A stretch of 64,000 nucleotides of DNA from the sequence record MW879344.1; one strand, 5' to 3'. The notes beneath the pieces were generated by a model. The model saw only the letters and a list, made by a program, of their open reading frames with translations. It did no database searches and was not told the DNA's origin. Positions 3,263 to 49,274 of this stretch are shown piece by piece. Every line of letters starts with the position of its first letter. The stretch's first letter is position 1. Position numbers and translations under genes: made by a program.

Positions 3263-3384
3263 GGCGAGTTAGCTCAGTTGGTAGAGCAGGAAAAAAACCG
3301 ATTCTTGTATTGAATCGTACAGCAAACAATACTATTGCACTTTTAATGCCCTTGTCGGGGGTTCAATTCCCTCACTCGCCACCA
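3263..3384 (+). tRNA. tRNA-Lys(TTT) interrupted by a 46-nt insert (3291-3336) in the anticodon stem
   Basis: Acceptor GGCGAGT/ACTCGCC+ACCA; removing 3291-3336 gives GG|GCA-CT-TTT-AA-TGCCC. Confidence 0.85.
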
Positions 3385-3444: not shown

Positions 3445-4056
3445 ATGAATATATGTTTACAATGTAATCAAGAAATTGATGATAAGAAAAAGTTTTGTAA
3501 TAAATCTTGTGCGGCAAAGTACAATAATTCTCATAGAATATTGTCGGAAGAAACAAAATCTAAAATTTCTAAATCTTTAAAAGATCGAGAAGCTAAATTT
3601 ATTGAAACTGAAAATGTTAAGGCTGGTAGACTTCGAGCAGGTGCAAAACGTAGTGAATATGCGATTGGAAAATTATTATCTGATGATTTTGAATCATTAA
3701 GTGTTATAAGAAAGAAAAAACGTGTAAAAATGGAACAAGATAATAAATGTTTAATATGTGATTTATCTGAATGGCGTGGTTCTTTATTAACATTGGAAGT
3801 AGATCATATAGATGGAAATAACATGAATAATAGTAGAGATAATTTAAGAGCTTTATGTCCTAATTGTCATTCACAAACTGAAACGTGGCGTGGGAAAAAT
3901 AGTAAAAAAGTTATTTCAGATGAACTTTTAATTGAGATTATTTCAGTTTCTTCATCTATTGCAGAAGTTATTCGAAATACCAATATGTCTAAATCAAAAA
4001 CTTCGTATAATAAAATCCGTGCTATTATGGAAATGAATAAACTATCATTTAACTAA
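3445..4056 (+). CDS. HNH homing endonuclease with N-terminal Zn-binding motif
   Basis: LEVDHIDGNNMNN...NLRALCPNCHSQT; CxxC...FCNKSC. Confidence 0.9.
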   Translation: MNICLQCNQEIDDKKKFCNKSCAAKYNNSHRILSEETKSKISKSLKDREAKFIETENVKAGRLRAGAKRSEYAIGKLLSDDFESLSVIRKKKRVKMEQDNKCLICDLSEWRGSLLTLEVDHIDGNNMNNSRDNLRALCPNCHSQTETWRGKNSKKVISDELLIEIISVSSSIAEVIRNTNMSKSKTSYNKIRAIMEMNKLSFN

Positions 4057-7274: not shown

Positions 7275-7680
7275 AATTATTTGTGGATTTCCTGGTATAG
7301 GTAAGAGTAGTATTAAAAATATCGGCAAAGTACTTGATTTGGATAGTTCTTTGTATACCAAGAATTCTTTATTTCCTGCTAATTATATTGTTGATATTGT
7401 ATCTGCAATGGATGAATATGATTATATTTTGGTAAGTACGCATGACGTACTTAGAAAAGAATTACAATCAATGGGTATTAGTTATACTAATGTATATCCA
7501 GAGATTGATTTAGGTGAAGAATACCACGACCGTTATGTTCAACGCGGAAGTCCTGAAAGTTTTATTAATTTTATTGATGAAAATTGGGATGACTTCATAT
7601 ACGAATTGCAGTATGATGATTCTGAATATGTTGAACTGGAAAGCGGTCAATTTCTTTCAGATATTATAGCAAATATTTGA
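7267..7680 (+). CDS. small P-loop NTPase/kinase-like protein
   Basis: Walker A GFPGIGKSS; DLDSS. Confidence 0.75.
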   Translation: MAKIICGFPGIGKSSIKNIGKVLDLDSSLYTKNSLFPANYIVDIVSAMDEYDYILVSTHDVLRKELQSMGISYTNVYPEIDLGEEYHDRYVQRGSPESFINFIDENWDDFIYELQYDDSEYVELESGQFLSDIIANI

Positions 7681-7706
7681 AACGAAAGAAAAAATTGTGG
7701 TATAAT
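7678..7706 (+). promoter_or_regulatory. TGAAAC-N17-TATAAT promoter class
   Basis: Same pattern at 7862-7890, 13345-13373, 17383-17411, 26431-26459, 41636-41664. Confidence 0.7.
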
Positions 7707-7723
7707 ATAGTACATAAGGCAAC

Positions 7724-7840
7724 GGAATCTTACAGCAAAAATACTAATTTTTGATGAAAACGAAACGACGAGGTTCGAATCCTCACCCACGAATTGCCTT
7801 ATTATTAGTGGGAGCACGGTGCTGGATAAACAAAGATTCC
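7724..7840 (+). ncRNA. module-clamped, permuted tRNA-like RNA (degenerate)
   Basis: GGAATC-TTACAGCAA...GAGG-TTCGAAT-CCTC-ACCCAC...GTGGG...AAACAAA-GATTCC. Confidence 0.65.
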
Positions 7841-7861
7841 AGAATTTAAGTTAGAAAATTA

Positions 7862-7890
7862 TGAAACAAATCAAAAATTTGTGGTATAAT
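7862..7890 (+). promoter_or_regulatory. TGAAAC-N17-TATAAT promoter class
   Basis: TGAAAC 7862-7867, TGG-TATAAT ending 7890. Confidence 0.7.
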
Positions 7891-7902
7891 ATAAGAAGTA
7901 AA

Positions 7903-8010
7903 GCGGGATGGTGATTGATGAAAGCTATTATTTGATTCTAGAAAATCATAATAAGCGAGTAAGAGAACAGGGTTCTTAATATCACGAGGGTTCGATCCCC
8001 TGTCGCTGCA
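7903..8010 (+). ncRNA. tRNA-like RNA with elongated central arm
   Basis: T-arm AGGG-TTCGATC-CCCT, imperfect acceptor GCGGGAT/GTCGCTGC, long central hairpin. Confidence 0.45.
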
Positions 8011-8023
8011 CAAAGCAACAAAC

Positions 8024-8141
8024 GAAATCTCACAGCAAACAAAACAATTTTTTTCCTTGCATAGAAAAACGGTGGGGTTCGATTCCCCAACATCCAAGTT
8101 GCTTTTAGGATGTGTCTGGAAGGCCGTATGACAAAGATTTC
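8024..8141 (+). ncRNA. module-clamped, permuted tRNA-like RNA (degenerate)
   Basis: GAAATCT-CACAGCAA...TGGGG-TTCGATT-CCCCA-ACATCC...GGATGT...ACAA-AGATTTC. Confidence 0.65.
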
Positions 8142-8317
8142 AGTTCCTATCAACTAAAAAGGATAGCATATAATGAGTTCTGAAGAAAATTTAGAATTAT
8201 TAAATAAAATAATGAATGCCATTGCAAATGGTAAGTTGAATGAAACAATGACTGAACTTGGTTACGAAGTAACTAAGAGTACTGATAAAAGTACAGAATG
8301 GTCATTAAAACAATAAT

Positions 8318-8391
8318 GTTCTGTTAGACAAATTGGTAAAGTCACCACCCTTTCAAGGTGGGGTTTACGGGTTCGACCCCCGTACAGAACG
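8318..8391 (+). tRNA. tRNA-Glu(TTC), uninterrupted
   Basis: GTTCTGT/ACAGAAC, CCACC-CT-TTC-AA-GGTGG; no encoded CCA. Confidence 0.92.
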
Positions 8392-8396
8392 CTAAA

Positions 8397-8506
8397 GGAT
8401 TCGCACAGCAACAATAAAATCTTAAAATTCAATTGGTGAAAACAACCTTGCAGTTCGATTCTGCTTCCACAATGCGTGGATCTGGTCGATAGAAAAAACC
8501 GAATCC
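8397..8506 (+). ncRNA. module-clamped, permuted tRNA-like RNA (degenerate)
   Basis: GGATTCG-CACAGCAA...GCAG-TTCGATT-CTGC-TTCCAC...GTGGA...AAAAAAC-CGAATCC. Confidence 0.6.
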
Positions 8507-8545
8507 TGATTTTAATTAAGAAGTACTAAAGAATTTGATACACAC

Positions 8546-8698
8546 GGATTTATACAGCAAACATAATCCTAAAATAAAACATACGATAATGTTACTAACT
8601 CGGAATTCGTTCCCTTCGTTAGTACTTGGCAACTTGGGTACTTAAATAAGTTGTATCACCTCACGTGTATCGGATTAGAGGTGATTATAAATAAATCC
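8546..8698 (+). ncRNA. module-clamped multi-hairpin RNA
   Basis: GGATTTA-TACAGCAA...three hairpins...TAAATCC. Confidence 0.6.
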
Positions 8699-8734
8699 AG
8701 TAACACAAAAGTACCTTGAACGGTACTTTTTTAT

Positions 8735-8827
8735 GGTAGGTTGGCAGAGTTTGGCTTATTGCACTTGTCTTGAAAACAAGCGGGGGTTAACAGCCCTCCG
8801 AGGGTTCAAATCCCTCACCTACCTCCA
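8735..8827 (+). tRNA. tRNA-Ser(TGA)
   Basis: GGTAGGT/ACCTACC, CTTGT-CT-TGA-AA-ACAAG, long variable arm, CCA. Confidence 0.93.
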
Positions 8828-8838
8828 ATACAATAAAG

Positions 8839-9156
8839 GTGAACATGATGGATTCAGTTGGTTTAATCGTTGTGTTTTTAGAACAACGTGTTCGTGGTTC
8901 TAATGAAATGCATTATGTAGTACAAGTTACTGAAGAAGGAACTTGTGACGTTCATGTTACTGACTCATGGAGTTTTAAGTCATGGGAAGATTTAAAAGAA
9001 ACGCATCCTACTTTCAAAAGTTTGTTATATGAATTTTTTAATTCTTGCAATTGGGCACCTTATGTAAACGAAAAAGAAATTTGGGCTGATGAAGTAATCG
9101 GCGGCGAAGGTCTTTATGATGATGATGATTCACATGTATTAAGTACTGATTTGTAA
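8839..9156 (+). CDS. hypothetical acidic protein
   Basis: ORF with AAGG SD; start codon among GTG/ATG uncertain. Confidence 0.75.
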   Translation: MNMMDSVGLIVVFLEQRVRGSNEMHYVVQVTEEGTCDVHVTDSWSFKSWEDLKETHPTFKSLLYEFFNSCNWAPYVNEKEIWADEVIGGEGLYDDDDSHVLSTDL

Positions 9157-9164
9157 AGTTCAAT

Positions 9165-9239
9165 GGGGTACGTAGCTCAGTCTGGTAGAGCAGCCATGCG
9201 AAAACGGTGTGTCGGTGGTTCGAATCCACTCGCTCCCCA
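9165..9239 (+). pseudogene. degenerate tRNA (Phe-like T-arm, anticodon unresolved)
   Basis: Intact D-arm and GGTGG-TTCGAAT-CCACT; mismatched acceptor and anticodon stems. Confidence 0.6.
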
Positions 9240-9243
9240 CTAA

Positions 9244-9300
9244 GGAATCTAGCAGCAACCATAACCCAATCAAACTTTTAATTTGACAATTATGGATTCC
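9244..9300 (+). ncRNA. module RNA carrying an isolated Lys(TTT)-type anticodon stem-loop
   Basis: GGAATC-TAGCAGCAA...TCAAA-CTTTTAA-TTTGA...GATTCC. Confidence 0.7.
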
Positions 9301-9478
9301 CGTTATTTTTAAGGATGTGATATGTCTAAAGAACAAGATGAATTTGAAAAAGAATATCTTATAAGTAAGCGTATTGATCCAAAAGCAACATTTTATATAA
9401 AATCTCGTAGAAAGAAAAATGGTTATAGAACTCGTGAATTGAATAATAAATTTCAAGAATTTCTTAAACGATTTAAAG

Positions 9479-11341: not shown

Positions 11342-11393
11342 AGAATCTAACAGCAATCAAAACTCATTGGATATATGAAAAAAGATAGATTCT
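11342..11393 (+). ncRNA. minimal module RNA
   Basis: AGAATCT-AACAGCAA...TCAT-loop-ATGA-AAAAAGAT-AGATTCT. Confidence 0.65.
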
Positions 11394-11473: not shown

Positions 11474-11573
11474 CGAAGTAGTTCAGTACTGAAAAATGTA
11501 CAGTGAAATTATTCAACACTATAGGTAGCACTTTGAATGAATCAGTAAGCCTATAAGTAACTACAATAAATTT

Positions 11574-11700
11574 GGAATTCAACAGCAATTCACTTACTAA
11601 AAACAGCTACCTCACGGTTTGTAGGTTCAAGTCCTACCTTGTACTTTCGAGTACATGTGGTGAAAATGGTAAACACGGCTGTCCAAAAGAAATGAATTCC
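11574..11700 (+). tRNA. circularly permuted tRNA gene, Leu(TAA)-like
   Basis: 3' half 11596-11644, T-TTCG-A linker, 5' half 11651-11682; GCTGT/ACAGC anticodon stem; flanked by GGAATTC/GAATTCC. Confidence 0.75.
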
Positions 11701-11753
11701 AGTATTAATTAAGACATAAATATTCTTATACACTTTTTTGTAAGGATATAATT

Positions 11754-12353
11754 ATGGAAATGAAAAAGTTGATGGAAGATATTTCTGCCATCATGGAAGG
11801 ACAATTACCTGGTTATTATTATCATGGAAGTTCTGCCCCAATATCAAATTTTAGTGATGAGTTTGTTGGTAGAGGAAATGATGAATACGGTCCGGGAATA
11901 TATTTTAGTTCAGTTCCAAATACTTCTATAGGTTATGCAAAAGATGGCGGTTCTAATGGAATGGTATATCAGTGCGAAATCAATTTAAGAAAAGAACTAT
12001 CTAAAAAAACTAGAGTTAATAAAGCAGTACTATTAAAATTAATGCAAAATACACCTGATGAAGATGCATATACTAACTGGAATGAAAATAAAAATGTTGC
12101 TTATAGAACAGCATTACAGGGTTATGTAGATGAAGGTAATATGTATGATGCGTTAATGGGTGTTTGGTACGATTGGTATAGAGAATATCCTGTTCAATTC
12201 GTGCGTTCACTAGTACAGTTAGGATATGATGGATACATATATACTTTTGCAAGCGGTGAACGTTTTATTATAGTATATAATCCAGCAAGTATAAAAGTTG
12301 TAAACACATTCAATCCAGAAGAAGCTATGCAGAAACTGATTGGAAGTGAATAA
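11754..12353 (+). CDS. ADP-ribosyltransferase-fold protein (ART-PolyVal-like), possibly virion-packaged
   Basis: YYHGS, GPGIYFS, YA, late E motifs; ATAAATA at 11716-11722. Confidence 0.6.
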   Translation: MEMKKLMEDISAIMEGQLPGYYYHGSSAPISNFSDEFVGRGNDEYGPGIYFSSVPNTSIGYAKDGGSNGMVYQCEINLRKELSKKTRVNKAVLLKLMQNTPDEDAYTNWNENKNVAYRTALQGYVDEGNMYDALMGVWYDWYREYPVQFVRSLVQLGYDGYIYTFASGERFIIVYNPASIKVVNTFNPEEAMQKLIGSE

Positions 12354-12361
12354 TAAGATTT

Positions 12362-12479
12362 GGAATTCAACAGCAAATCATTCTAAACCCGTAGCATGTC
12401 GTAGGTTCAAGTCCTACCAGTACTTTCGAGTACTGTAGCTCAGTTGGTAGAGCAGCCACCTTAAAAAGAAATGAATTCC
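12362..12479 (+). tRNA. circularly permuted tRNA-like gene, anticodon unresolved
   Basis: T-arm and CAGTACT, TTCG, AGTACTG and D-arm GCTC/GAGC; flanked by GGAATTC/GAATTCC. Confidence 0.7.
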
Positions 12480-12511
12480 AGTATTAATTAAAACAACATG
12501 AGTATAAATCA

Positions 12512-12971: not shown

Positions 12972-13034
12972 GGAATCTAGCAGCACCCATAAAATGAAAT
13001 CAACTGTTAATTGAAAAATTCAAAAATGGATTCC
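12972..13034 (+). ncRNA. module RNA carrying an isolated Asn(GTT)-type anticodon stem-loop
   Basis: GGAATC-TAGCAGCA...TCAA-CTGTTAA-TTGA...GATTCC. Confidence 0.7.
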
Positions 13035-13581: not shown

Positions 13582-13636
13582 AAGAATCTAACAGCAATCA
13601 AAACTCATTCGATTATATGAAAAAAGATAGATTCTT
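13582..13636 (+). ncRNA. minimal module RNA
   Basis: Near-copy of 11342-11393. Confidence 0.65.
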
Positions 13637-13865: not shown

Positions 13866-13947
13866 GCGGGATTAGCTCAGTGGTAGAGCACTTGCCTTCC
13901 AAGCAAGAGGCGAATAGGTTCCATCGGTTCGAATCCGATATTCCGCT
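13866..13947 (+). tRNA. tRNA-Gly(TCC) with enlarged variable region
   Basis: GCGGGAT/ATTCCGC, U73, CTTGC-CT-TCC-AA-GCAAG, ~15-nt variable region. Confidence 0.85.
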
Positions 13948-14065
13948 CAAACTAAACAAACAATAAGGTGATTTTTATGCTATAGAATCCTAGTACTGGT
14001 CCTCCTAAAGAATTTAATTCTGATATAAACAACTCAAAATTAAACTACTATAGGAAGAACATACC

Positions 14066-14400: not shown

Positions 14401-14457
14401 AAGAATCCAGCAGCAACTAAAACTCATTCGCTTAATATGAAAAAGAAACGGATTCTT
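14401..14457 (+). ncRNA. minimal module RNA
   Basis: AAGAATCC-AGCAGCAA...TCAT-loop-ATGA...GGATTCTT. Confidence 0.65.
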
Positions 14458-20427: not shown

Positions 20428-20514
20428 GGGTCGTTCACTCAGTTGGTTAGAGTACCGGACTTTTAATCCGGCGGGTATATCCCATCGAAGGTTCGAATCC
20501 TTCACGGCCTACCA
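20428..20514 (+). tRNA. tRNA-Lys(TTT) with long variable arm
   Basis: CCGGA-CT-TTT-AA-TCCGG, GGG-TATAT-CCC variable hairpin, ACCA. Confidence 0.88.
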
Positions 20515-38127: not shown

Positions 38128-39120
38128 GTGAGCATCAAAAAGCTAAACTTAGATGAAATTCAGGATGAGATTCTAGATGAGTGTTTTAACAGTGAAGATA
38201 AAACACTTGACTCGTTAGTTGTCGATGAAGATGATTTCGAAGTAGAAAGTACCGAAGAAGTTATCGATACTGGTCTAACTATGGATAAGATTAAATCCAA
38301 AGTAAAAACAGAGCAGTACATCAGTAATGAAGTTTTAGTTCGTAATGTACAGAATAATATTGATGTTGAACGTTCAAAAGAACTTCTAATCATGTTCAAC
38401 AGTGGCTTAGTGTATAACGAAGCAAAGAACTGTACTTGTAACATTCCGTTCCAAGATAAAGTACAATACGGTTTTGAAGGATTAATGAAAGCTATCTATG
38501 GTTTCAATACAAACTTCAAAACAATGTTCAGTACTTATGCAACTACCGCGATCCGTCAACATATGTACCGAAACGGAAACAACGATGTGCGTATGGTAGC
38601 GTTACCAGAGCATCTATCAATGCACAATATCCGCATCCAGAGCTTCATTGAGAAGACCATGCAGGACAGTACTGGCTACCCTACGCACGAACAGATCTCA
38701 GAGGGTACGGGCATTGACATTCGTTCAGTGAAGCGTATAATGAACTACAACAGCAACACATTCAGCATCGACACCCCAATGAATCGCGGTGGGGATGAAG
38801 GGTCACAACAGACTCTAAAAGATATGATTCCTGGTGAAAGTGGGGATTACATCGTAGATGAACGTTGTGTAAGTAAAGACTTCCTAAGCACAATGGAAGA
38901 TATTATGAATGAACTAGAAGAACATGAACGTGTATTGTTAGGTTTAGTTCATGGTTTAGATGGTTATCGTATTCATACATTTGATGAAATTATTAGTACT
39001 GGATATATCGACAGTACTGGTAAGTATGTTTCATCTAAAGCAACATTATCTCGCCGTTATAGTGCTGTGATGGATAAAGTACGCCGCATTGTTGAACGTA
39101 AACAAATCAGTTTTGACTAA
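38128..39120 (+). CDS. sigma70-family RNA polymerase sigma factor
   Basis: Region 2 NSGLV..EAK, GLMKAI..F..FSTYATTAIR; region 3 PTHEQI, SIDTP; region 4-like LEEHER...TFDEI. Confidence 0.85.
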   Translation: MSIKKLNLDEIQDEILDECFNSEDKTLDSLVVDEDDFEVESTEEVIDTGLTMDKIKSKVKTEQYISNEVLVRNVQNNIDVERSKELLIMFNSGLVYNEAKNCTCNIPFQDKVQYGFEGLMKAIYGFNTNFKTMFSTYATTAIRQHMYRNGNNDVRMVALPEHLSMHNIRIQSFIEKTMQDSTGYPTHEQISEGTGIDIRSVKRIMNYNSNTFSIDTPMNRGGDEGSQQTLKDMIPGESGDYIVDERCVSKDFLSTMEDIMNELEEHERVLLGLVHGLDGYRIHTFDEIISTGYIDSTGKYVSSKATLSRRYSAVMDKVRRIVERKQISFD

Positions 39121-46211: not shown

Positions 46212-46276
46212 AATCTGCTTGACTTATGAACAATTAATGTAGTACTATGGACTCTCACATTAGAAGGGAGTCCATA

Positions 46277-46789
46277 ATGATTAAGTTAGAGTTCAATTCA
46301 GAACCAGTGGTAGCGTATCGCAACACTTGCTGCATGTGCTGTGGAATACCACAAGTGTCCAACCAGCACTTTTTAAAACCCAATGGGAAGCCTGTACAGG
46401 TCACTAGCGACCATGTGCTGCTGAAGTCGTTGGGTGGCTCAGCTAAGGCCGAAAACCTCGTGGTGATGTGCTACGATTGCAATCAGTTGAGGGCAAATCT
46501 CTTTGCTGAACTGGAACAGTTTATTGATTGGTATTGGAGTGGGAAAGAACTACCAACTGAAAAAAACTTCAGTTATATAAAAGATAATCCTAAGTACAAA
46601 CGTAATTACCGATTCACATTTGAAACTCCAGAGAAGCATGTAACACACAAGACACCATCTAGTACTGGTGTTGTGCTACCAAGCAAAAATACATCAGTAC
46701 CCCTAAATGTTATTGTAATGAATGGTGTTAAGTATCAAGAATACAAACATCCTTTATTTGGTAACAGCCTAATTAAGATAGAGGATTAA
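46277..46789 (+). CDS. HNH endonuclease-domain protein
   Basis: CCMCC...TSDHVLLKSLGGS...NLVVMCYDCN. Confidence 0.85.
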   Translation: MIKLEFNSEPVVAYRNTCCMCCGIPQVSNQHFLKPNGKPVQVTSDHVLLKSLGGSAKAENLVVMCYDCNQLRANLFAELEQFIDWYWSGKELPTEKNFSYIKDNPKYKRNYRFTFETPEKHVTHKTPSSTGVVLPSKNTSVPLNVIVMNGVKYQEYKHPLFGNSLIKIED

Positions 46790-48049: not shown

Positions 48050-48322
48050 ATGATTCGACCAGATATGAACGTTATTCAACGTTGGAATACCGTTAAGGTT
48101 TCTGATCTTCCAGAACTTCTAAAATCACAGGGATTTCATTTTGTAAAATCTTTTAGTACTGATGAACATAGGATTTTTGTTAGTCAAGATAATTCATTGA
48201 TGATAATCTTTGAACGTAATGTAGGGAAAGTGTATAGTACTCGAAATCGTAAACAGTCTTTACATTCATTCACTGTAGTACCAGAAGGTCCAAAGTTAAA
48301 TCAAATAAAACGTGCTGAATAA
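48050..48322 (+). CDS. hypothetical protein
   Basis: AAGGA SD. Confidence 0.75.
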   Translation: MIRPDMNVIQRWNTVKVSDLPELLKSQGFHFVKSFSTDEHRIFVSQDNSLMIIFERNVGKVYSTRNRKQSLHSFTVVPEGPKLNQIKRAE

Positions 48323-48404
48323 AAACAAAAAAGGGGTTGACTTAGGTCAGCCCCTTTGCTATTATACTAGCATTGAAACGGATAACCTTTTAAGTGAGAT
48401 ACTA

Positions 48405-49274
48405 ATGTCTACTCCAACAGTTAAAAACATTAAATTTAAACCTTCATATGTAATGAATTTCAACACTAATGTTAACGGTATTCGTTTTACCAAAAACGTT
48501 GAAAAGGTTATTGAAGTTATGAAGCGGGATGGTTTAAAGTGTCATTGTTGTGAAGAAAGTTCAGTATTTTTTAAAGTTATTGATAACGATTATATGGCTG
48601 CGTTTGTTGATCGTGATGGACAACACGTTCGCCTTACGTTAGACCATGATCATTTAGATTCAATGGGTGGTTCAGATACCATCGATAACTTTCATGTTCT
48701 TTGTGAGCAATGTAATCTTCTTCGTGATGATCGTTTTGCCGAGTACAGTACTTTTAAATCATGGTATGATGAAAAGAAATTGTCTGGTAAAAAGATTTGC
48801 AAACCAAACATGCGTAACTATTCTCGTATAGATTTTGAATACATGATCAAACATCGTTTATCTGAAATCAATTTCAGTGCTGGTGTTCCAGCACCAATGA
48901 AAATACAATTGCGTAATTATGTATTATCTCACAACAAATTGAGTGGACGCTACACCGCTAGTGCATTAAAGCGTATTAGTTCAAAGCATATGAATAATTT
49001 CTTATCTAAACTCGTACATGAAATTGCAGCTAAGCGAACTAATTCAGATATTCTTACAAATATCAGTACTCTTAATTTCTATCCTAAAGTTACTAAAGGA
49101 ACAACTTCCAAAGAATTTTTAGATAAGTTGGATAATAATTTTAAAATGCATTTGAAAAATACCGTTAAAATGTATTCATCTTCAGAAGTACAACAGAAAG
49201 TACTTAATGTACATACATCACGAACCGGAATCTGGACACGAATTACTGAAGCATTCAAAATATTGTTTTGTTAA
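48405..49274 (+). CDS. HNH endonuclease-domain protein
   Basis: CHCC...TLDHDHLDSMGGS...NFHVLCEQCN. Confidence 0.8.
   Translation: MSTPTVKNIKFKPSYVMNFNTNVNGIRFTKNVEKVIEVMKRDGLKCHCCEESSVFFKVIDNDYMAAFVDRDGQHVRLTLDHDHLDSMGGSDTIDNFHVLCEQCNLLRDDRFAEYSTFKSWYDEKKLSGKKICKPNMRNYSRIDFEYMIKHRLSEINFSAGVPAPMKIQLRNYVLSHNKLSGRYTASALKRISSKHMNNFLSKLVHEIAAKRTNSDILTNISTLNFYPKVTKGTTSKEFLDKLDNNFKMHLKNTVKMYSSSEVQQKVLNVHTSRTGIWTRITEAFKILFC

Follow-up and report, generated by a model that had tools for sequence, protein, structure and literature searches.

The window analysed here, a stretch of 64,000 nucleotides (nt) from record MW879344.1, is the final 64 kb of the record of Erwinia phage pEa_SNUABM_49 and forms its tRNA-rich end. 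Its 21-22 tRNA genes all lie on the + strand, mixed with small open reading frames (ORFs). Among them lie three related elements, copy A (7724-7840), copy B (8024-8141) and copy C (8396-8507, starting 3 nt past a tRNA-Glu gene), which are predicted from their sequence to be paralogous genes for structured noncoding RNAs of one family. These copies, their promoters and all further members of the window described below lie on the + strand. Over 7600-9400, identity is 100% with pEa_SNUABM_49 and 99.3% with Serratia phage BF. Both are jumbo phages of the genus Eneladusvirus with genomes of ~357 kb, and in the BF record the stretch corresponding to 7690-8170 is unannotated.

Each copy is built in the same order: a terminal helix (H), the motif ACAGCAA, a variable region, a T arm, a capped acceptor hairpin, a reduced D hairpin containing UGG, an A-rich strand and the return strand of the helix. 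In copy A, H is formed by 7724-7731 and 7833-7840, ACAGCAA occupies 7732-7738 and the T arm 7770-7784, followed by the capped acceptor hairpin (7786-7790/7808-7812), the D-like hairpin (7813-7823) and the A-rich strand (7824-7832). The corresponding parts of copy B are H at 8024-8030/8135-8141, ACAGCAA at 8032-8038, the T arm at 8073-8089, the capped acceptor hairpin at 8090-8095/8108-8113 and a D-like region with UGG; those of copy C are H at 8396-8403/8500-8507, ACAGCAA at 8405-8411, the T arm at 8450-8464, the acceptor hairpin at 8466-8470/8476-8480 and the D-like hairpin at 8481-8493. The closing helices are GGAATCTT/AAGATTCC, GAAATCT/AGATTTC and AGGATTCG/CGAATCCT, and the T arms GAGG-TTCGAAT-CCTC, TGGGG-TTCGATT-CCCCA and GCAG-TTCGATT-CTGC, for copies A, B and C respectively.

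This layout had been proposed in an earlier note made from the letters of the sequence. All of the strings quoted there were found where it had placed them (ACAGCAA at 7732, 8032 and 8405), and RNAfold agrees with the arrangement, the closing helix, T arm, acceptor hairpin and D-like hairpin being present in the minimum-free-energy structures of all three copies. In these structures the closing helix surrounds a multiloop; a T arm of 4-5 bp with a UUCGAWU loop is followed immediately by a hairpin of 5-6 bp at the acceptor position, and then by a small hairpin with UGG in its loop. The strand pairs CCCAC/GTGGG, ACATCC/GGATGT and TCCAC/GTGGA, which had been assigned to the acceptor, do form capped hairpins. 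The UGG of the D-like loop is the equivalent of G18/G19, which are required for the elbow of a tRNA, and the T arm, acceptor and UGG-bearing D hairpin suffice to build that elbow. The fold-energy z-scores of the three copies (-2.3, -0.8 and -1.9) are modest, so that single-sequence energy lends the structure only weak support.

Neither ARAGORN nor the Rfam tRNA model makes a call at 7724-7840, 8024-8141 or 8396-8507. A working tRNA is rejected for all three copies because they have no anticodon loop and because their acceptor stems are short (5-6 bp) and capped, instead of having 7 bp with free ends. Of the two interpretations put forward in the earlier note, that of diverged permuted tRNAs therefore does not hold if it means genes whose products mature into working tRNAs. 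The other, a mimic of the tRNA elbow or minihelix, is still the best reading.

Copies A and B appear to be dedicated RNA genes with sigma-70 promoters of their own, as predicted from sequence. The promoter of copy A (7677-7706; TTGAAA-18-TATAAT with a TG extension, 11/12 matches plus TG) is kept in all orthologues, ~7 nt 5' of a short leader. A second sigma-70 promoter lies at 7861-7890 (ATGAAA-18-TATAAT with TG), and in phages resembling Pectobacterium phage CBB its equivalent directly precedes the leader of copy B. An extended -10 promoter sequence, TGTGGTATAAT, is conserved before the copy A leader in all of the phages and before the copy B leader in the CBB-like phages. The position of a conserved promoter ~7 nt before the leader suggests that the leader is the 5' end of the primary transcript. 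In copy A the leader, AUAAGGCAA (7714-7722), pairs with the acceptor-cap loop at 7794-7802 (ATAAGGCAA with TTGCCTTAT, 9 bp); in copy B the leader, AAAGCAAC (8012-8019), pairs with the acceptor-cap loop GUUGCUUU at 8098-8105 (AAAGCAAC with GTTGCTTT, 8 bp, of which 6 bp had been recognized previously). This pairing is predicted to lock a pseudoknot in both copies. Between the second promoter and copy B is a degenerate tRNA-like stretch (7893-8010), whose 3' end consists of the T-arm-like AGGG-TTCGATC-CCCT followed by GTCGCTGCA, and whose Rfam tmRNA (transfer-messenger RNA) match reaches only 7.7 bits. It is present in Eneladusviruses and in the metagenomic locus L004, and absent from the CBB-like phages, where the promoter abuts the copy B leader; its membership of the family is uncertain.

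Orthologues of each copy were found in Yersinia phage fHe-Yen9-04, in Pectobacterium phage CBB (Mimasvirus) and in several IMG/VR contigs 355-378 kb long. Of the 1.8 kb query (7600-9400), megablast still matches only copy A with its promoter in CBB. Conservation across relatives, proposed in the earlier note as a check, is borne out: the orthologues retain both the helices and the pairing of leader with acceptor loop through compensatory changes. In the alignments of copies A and B, 96-97% of cells are paired, compared with 32-51% when the partners are slid (96.4% against 41-51% for copy A; 97.3% for copy B). In copy A, an A-U pair of the T arm switches to G-C among orthologues, and the ninth pair of the leader helix is A-U, G-C or U-A depending on the phage, with one mismatch. 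In copy B, one T-arm pair appears as G-C, C-G or U-A and one acceptor pair as G-C, A-U or U-A; GUUGCU in the cap loop is invariant although the stem beneath it covaries. The copy B leader pairing, read from the sequences of the orthologues, extends over 6-8 bp, with one compensatory change of A-U to U-A and one broken pair. The closing helix of copy C differs between Eneladusviruses (AGGAUUCG) and CBB-like phages (AAGAAUCG), the 3' strand matching in each; its 5' strand is AGGATTCG in the former and AAGAATCG in the latter.

The three copies belong to a large and apparently undescribed family of structured RNAs situated between the tRNA genes of big phages. The earlier note was right on their anatomy, and missed the family, its YrlA-like architecture, the two conserved promoters and the positions of its members as spacers of tRNA arrays. 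Common to the family is a constant module, in which the two ends of the RNA form a terminal helix H of 7-10 bp ending in an invariant C:G pair; single-stranded ACAGCAA follows 0-2 nt on, and on the 3' side an A- or purine-rich strand leads back into the 3' arm of H. The consensus of the constant part is A-RRAAUC-WW-ACAGCAA-W ... A-rich-GAUUYY-G-U. ACAGCAA is present in 58/58 scanned elements. As the motif was a condition of that scan, its invariance there holds by construction, but the alignments made with the models are in agreement. In the window at least 16 elements carry the module, all on the + strand. All three copies have the covarying H, the C:G pair, ACAGCAA and the A-rich strand, and are situated in a tRNA region of a phage, on its transcribed strand.

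Relatives were gathered by an exact-pattern scan of IMG/VR in which AATC..ACAGCAA and a T loop were demanded. This returned 27 loci on phage contigs of 45-378 kb, with many further members whose helix sequences are quite different. Two covariance models were then built without any window sequence. R1, made from 14 short members of metagenomic phages only, finds 5/5 of the short members of the window (E 0.001-0.1, + strand only) and nothing else convincing. Over 26 sources it gives 48 matches (46 distinct), in which, in an alignment fitted to the model, helix H is 98.4% paired compared with 35-57% for slid partners; 6/7 of its pairs show two-sided changes, and the pair adjoining the motif is always C:G. 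R2, made from 15 metagenomic members with a tRNA body, matches all three copies over its full length on the + strand: copy A at 7723-7841 (48.1 bits, E 1e-7), copy C at 8396-8507 (37.1 bits, E 2.5e-5) and copy B at 8023-8142 (35.1 bits, E 6e-5), the E-values being rough as the calibration was shortened. These full-length matches indicate that the three copies are diverged members of the family. No description of the family was found in the literature, within a searchable library that is incomplete; PMC10690425, with its 10,006 candidates, may contain it without a name.

The module carries cargo of three forms. The first is a permuted tRNA body, as in copies A, B and C; the best examples match the tRNA-like domain of YrlA, including UAGCUCAGUUGGUAGAGC and GGUUCRAnUCC, at 27-40 bits. 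In the window this form also occurs at 11574-11700, with a UUCG-capped acceptor hairpin (R2 55.8 bits, 11573-11701), and at 12362-12479, with a canonical D arm and UUCG cap (R2 71.6 bits, 12361-12480). The second form is a single hairpin. The five short members of the window are 52-63 nt in size: 9244-9300, with the inner hairpin UCAAA-CUUUUAA-UUUGA carrying the tRNA-Lys anticodon loop (R1 28.4 bits), and four others also detected by R1, at 11342-11393 (ending 7 nt before tRNA-Ile), 12972-13034 (inner hairpin loop CUGUUAA, the tRNA-Asn loop), 13583-13635 (ending 6 nt before tRNA-Gln) and 14402-14456. In 7/28 short members, with six different stem sequences, the 7-nt loop is exactly CUUUUAA, that of tRNA-Lys(UUU); shuffling predicts 0.31 such loops, and 0/2000 shuffles reach seven. 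Other loops of short members are CUGUUAA (Asn), UUGUGAU (His) and CUUUCAC (Glu). These hairpin loops equal positions 32-38 of the corresponding E. coli anticodon loops. A mini-tmRNA was considered for the short members and rejected: a frame starting from the GCA of the motif reaches the UAA of the loop in 3/8 of the examined members with a CUUUUAA loop, which is the rate expected by chance.

The third form is a whole tRNA, of Lys, Glu, Tyr, Pro or Gln type, in which a block of 45-50 nt, made up of an A-rich linker, the H hairpin, NN-ACAGCAA and ~10 nt, interrupts the anticodon stem in its 5' strand, between nt 28 and 29. The window has three such unpermuted members: a Glu-like tRNA at 1614-1729 (loop AUUUCAC, module between nt 28 and 29, motif variant ACGGCAU), a degenerate Tyr-like tRNA at 2060-2185 (loop CUGUAAA, module inserted) and a Lys-like tRNA at 3263-3384 (loop CUUUUAA, ACCA end, module in the 5' strand of the anticodon stem). 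The anticodon stem is intact across the insertion in most whole-tRNA members, the Tyr-like copy of the window being degenerate. The Lys-like tRNA scores 46.5 bits against the Rfam tRNA model with a long insertion; at the homologous locus of BF, annotated tRNA-Pseudo, the module hairpin differs. All three forms can be derived, by circular permutation or deletion, from a single three-way junction of helix H, the anticodon hairpin and the tRNA body. The permuted form may have arisen when an insertion-bearing tRNA was duplicated in tandem and the outer halves were then lost.

It could be argued that such elements are decaying tRNA pseudogenes, or repeats that act at the DNA level as recombination or homing sites, with no RNA function. 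HNH homing endonuclease genes are indeed nearby, the D arms and acceptor stems are degenerate, and RefSeq calls the unpermuted form pseudo-tRNA. Nevertheless, compensatory changes keep the RNA helices, in which G-U pairs are present, the elements occupy one strand only, and the conserved promoters and leader pseudoknot argue for a product. As the family is in addition kept across very different phages, we regard the absence of an RNA function as most improbable.

The relationship between the unpermuted and permuted forms invites comparison with split and permuted genes. As in the permuted tRNA genes of Cyanidioschyzon merolae and the permuted, two-piece tmRNA genes, the 3' half is encoded upstream of the 5' half in all three copies, and leader and trailer pair. 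Unlike those genes, the copies have no bulge-helix-bulge, anticodon loop, tag frame or CCA, and the acceptors of the family are tightly capped (by UUCG in two members). In the three copies H is flanked by ACAGCAA and ~20 nt on one side and by the ~10-nt A-rich strand on the other, with no bulge-helix-bulge, and no 7-nt anticodon loop can be rebuilt. No tmRNA_permuted match and no consistent tag frame were found on them.

The module might be an intron-like handle for splicing by a phage endoribonuclease and ligase, so that insertion-bearing tRNAs are spliced and permuted genes are joined at H into circles, in the manner of red-algal permuted tRNA genes and archaeal split tRNAs. The derivation of unpermuted and permuted forms from one junction by circular permutation fits this idea, as does an anticodon stem that is perfect, in most insertion-bearing tRNAs, once the 45-50 nt insertion is ignored. 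BF has furthermore been reported to carry a cluster of PIN endoRNase, 2H phosphoesterase and sirtuin genes predicted to process RNA ends for ligation (PMC9503650), though nothing in the present analysis ties that cluster to these RNAs. Splicing is nonetheless improbable, given that the bulge-helix-bulge is missing, that an anticodon loop which joining could restore is lacking in the three copies and in most other tRNA-body members, whose acceptor stems are 5-6 bp or capped by UUCG, and that the phage already encodes ordinary Lys, Glu and Tyr tRNAs. The boldest extension of the idea, in which the module is the handle of a phage cutting and joining system that yields spliced tRNAs and exonuclease-proof rings mimicking tRNA, the rings and the anticodon stem-loop members being decoys for tRNA-cleaving defence nucleases, is a similarly long shot; if true, it would represent the first case in bacterial viruses of a system for splicing and permuting tRNAs.

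The members are placed closely between tRNA genes. When ARAGORN was run on all loci, ~24 elements were found to end 4-8 nt (mostly 6-7) before the next tRNA, and locus L023 contains six consecutive element-tRNA units with that spacing. Several elements start 1-6 nt past the previous tRNA. This spacing suggests that many members are structured spacers of tRNA arrays. The principal rival to a function as free RNAs is that the elements act only in cis, as punctuation or insulation of long tRNA/mRNA transcripts: H would loop out the spacer, juxtapose the tRNA ends, leave a 6-7 nt leader for RNase P and prevent co-misfolding of neighbouring tRNAs, any excised RNA being a by-product. The spacing to the tRNAs on either side, including the six units in a row in L023, speaks for this proposal, and all elements are intergenic and on the transcribed strand. 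However, copies A and B have predicted promoters of their own and the gene that follows them is not a tRNA; in whole tRNAs the module is internal; and simple spacers would have no need of an invariant 7-nt motif, exact copies of anticodon loops or conserved tRNA bodies. A purely cis-acting role is thus unlikely, if less so than the other alternatives.

Among known RNAs, the nearest parallel in design is YrlA (RF02553), a bacterial Y RNA. As in YrlA, a stem made from the RNA ends encloses the variable region, T arm, loop-capped acceptor and D arm, and nucleotides invariant in tRNAs are kept (Chen et al. 2014, PMC4201824). The three copies show this order within their end-formed stem. Both are also modular in build, in that YrlA has a sister, YrlB, without the tRNA domain, corresponding to the short members here. 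The D. radiodurans Y RNAs Yrn1 and Yrn2 are co-transcribed with a tRNA (PMC4201824). In contrast to YrlA, whose 5' motif GNCGAAN0-1G is the proposed contact with Ro60 (PMC4201824), the phage RNAs have ACAGCAA in that place; they occur in a dozen or more copies per genome, within tRNA arrays, and their cargo extends to anticodon stem-loops and whole tRNAs.

Rfam YrlA scores 40.5 bits on 12394-12456 (model positions 24-84), within the sister copy at 12362, and 27-36 bits on metagenomic members. The gathering score of 69 bits is not reached, 40.5 being the best in the window, and the three copies have no YrlA match at E values up to 10. The window contains no ORF of a size matching a Ro60/TROVE gene. 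A tblastn search with Ro60 of mycobacteriophage Bxz1 (gp220) yielded 358 phage records, mostly from actinobacterial hosts, with none listed under Erwinia, Serratia, Yersinia, Pectobacterium or Klebsiella. With both the Ro60 motif and a Ro60 gene absent, and scores far below gathering, the elements are not assigned to YrlA. One may still ask whether they are true YrlA-type RNAs that bind the Ro60 (Rsr) of the host and tether it to PNPase, as the tRNA-like domain has the same order, there are partial Rfam matches, and enterobacteria such as Salmonella carry rsr together with YrlA (PMC4201824). Since known YrlA genes lie within 4 kb of rsr, and in view of the missing motif, the scores, all below 69, the three unmatched copies and the host range of the phage Ro60 records, the chance of this seems very slight.

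The interpretation that we favour, with a probability of roughly 0.5, is that the family consists of stable, two-module tRNA-mimic RNAs that are processed along with the phage tRNAs and act as decoys or adaptors. The RNAs would be cut from tRNA/mRNA polycistrons by tRNA-processing enzymes, cleavage of the following tRNA by RNase P setting the 3' side of members. Shielded at their ends by H and the tRNA fold, they may then survive as stable small RNAs; a stabilizing role of that kind has been proposed for YrlA (PMC4201824). Action would resemble that of Y RNAs, the constant module serving as a handle for one partner or for processing and the tRNA-part module engaging proteins that recognize tRNA. 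During infection, they would most likely serve to titrate or divert host enzymes that act on tRNA, among them the anticodon nucleases of anti-phage defence. PrrC and PARIS target tRNA-Lys. Septu is reported to cleave tRNA-Tyr (PMC13096335). A decoy role is made attractive by the fact that the anticodons of the cargo (Lys, Glu, Gln, Tyr, Asn and His) are of classes hit by known anticodon nucleases.

Several points weigh against this interpretation. The same set of anticodons would fit codon-usage compensation in an AT-rich phage, which makes the argument from defence nucleases a weak one. No binding partner was found by co-occurrence or in Pfam: blastp of 372 ORFs of unrelated loci against 208 window ORFs gave only HNH endonucleases in common, and Pfam on 30 window ORFs revealed no RNA-binding or RNA-processing domain except one methyltransferase. 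The interpretation does not account for the invariant ACAGCAA. No RNA runs covering the region are listed for this phage, and contigs from sequencing runs that match the region miss all three copies and do not demonstrate transcription. Single-sequence fold energies are unremarkable, that of copy B (z -0.8) especially. Helix H is constant inside orthologue groups and covaries only among paralogues and distant phages, and the alignment from which its covariation was counted had been fitted to the model. The collection pattern, finally, biases at least one element per locus, although it did not require the many other members that these loci contain.

RNAs released from tRNA clusters are not without precedent. 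The spacer RNAs of tRNA operons, such as 3'ETS-leuZ of E. coli, and species 1 and 2 of phage T4 (rnaC and rnaD) are stable RNAs from tRNA clusters that are freed by tRNA-processing nucleases. The sponges among the spacer RNAs work through base pairing and lack a cargo that mimics tRNA. The module of helix and ACAGCAA is absent from T4 rnaC and rnaD.

At permissive thresholds, Rfam placed no ribozyme, riboswitch or tmRNA family on the copies, giving only sub-threshold matches to YrlA and to Dictyostelium Class I RNAs (RF01414). The latter is the only non-tRNA Rfam family that repeatedly touches the elements, with weak matches of 24.3 bits (8024-8182) and 30.7 bits (locus L018, 7924-7996) against a gathering score of 41.5, at E ~0.1. 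Like the short members, Class I RNAs (PMC7919456) have a stem joining the ends, a conserved 11-nt motif beside its 5' strand with a consensus that shares CUUACAGCAA, a variable AU-rich interior, an A-rich run before the 3' strand and then UG, and they are of similar size (42-65 nt), a likeness that may reflect common descent, convergence or chance. However, they are eukaryotic, reported from dictyostelids only, have a DUSE promoter ~60 nt upstream and contain no tRNA parts, whereas the present copies come from a phage of enterobacteria with predicted sigma-70 promoters. Three further candidates were rejected: rrn/lambda boxA antitermination, since on inspection the boxA-like part lies inside the covarying helix; K-turn and box C/D motifs, which cannot be fitted to the members as a whole; and an antisense target, as the complement TTGCTGT is not enriched in the window. 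It is also conceivable that AGCAA and NGAAA make interdigitated T-loops on which a tRNA elbow would dock.

Cleavage of tRNAs is a major branch of bacterial anti-phage defence, and the spacers of tRNA arrays in large phages have hitherto been ignored. These spacers hold a conserved modular RNA family in which a single invariant scaffold presents a tRNA body, an exact anticodon loop or a whole tRNA. Its occurrence in phages of distant hosts, without Ro60, makes it a second, independent case of the YrlA design. The family provides a testable set of candidate RNA decoys or adaptors, its invariant 7-mer offers a bait for a partner, and it may be behind the pseudo-tRNA calls made when phages are annotated. 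These phages are candidates for the biocontrol of fire blight.

Close to copy C lies a 153-nt member with a non-tRNA interior (8546-8698), which has an orthologue in CBB and conserved interior blocks, ACUCGGA...CCCUUCGU...CUUGGCAACU. Short contigs of three sequencing runs (X12, X17 and X18) cover only 8533-8764, corresponding to this member, and nothing else nearby. One contig of 211 nt, 100% identical to the 8533-8764 area, comes from a small run labelled RNA and is no more than a hint; this element may be an abundant RNA.

A pattern scan of bacterial and archaeal genomes gave 18 matches, mostly chance or tmRNA. Three look real, all on contigs of metagenome-assembled genomes: L043 (Carnobacterium), L044 (Akkermansiaceae) and L049 (a contig binned as Methanobrevibacter). 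These contigs may be phage or prophage, and some of their members are permuted yet retain the tRNA body together with the anticodon hairpin. Genes for tmRNA also occur in metagenomic phages with the family (L014, 4162-4492; L017, 6897-7359; L026, 7805-8320; L024, 417-609), with Rfam scores of 60-99 bits, one of them, at 65 bits, being of the permuted type. The tmRNA of L026 is immediately preceded by a tRNA-body member.

The two paralogous tRNA-body members at 11574-11700 and 12362-12479 flank an ADP-ribosyltransferase gene (11754-12350; Pfam ART-PolyVal, E 2e-11) and have an identical closing helix and an identical 3' flank, AGUAUUAAUUAA. In locus L029 the two corresponding members are 118 nt apart with no intervening gene. 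In RaK2-like phages a recurrent flank 3' of the helix consists of (A/U)G and then UUUUAAUUAAGA or UAUUAAUUAA; window examples are at 7841-7855, 8508-8522, 11701-11715 and 12480-12494.

HNH homing-endonuclease genes are located at 3445-4053, 46247-46786 and 48312-49271. The first directly follows the module-bearing Lys-like tRNA; homologues of its product are the sole proteins in common with unrelated metagenomic loci (L005, L009 and L025). The ORF at 38128-39117 has sigma-70 region 2 and region 3 domains and thus encodes a phage sigma factor. Three tRNAs of the window are unusual (9166-9238, 13866-13948 and 20428-20514): one of them has no ARAGORN call, an Rfam score of 36 bits and a tRNA-Ser annotation in BF, and a tRNA-Gly and a tRNA-Lys(UUU), of 83 and 87 nt, have long variable regions.

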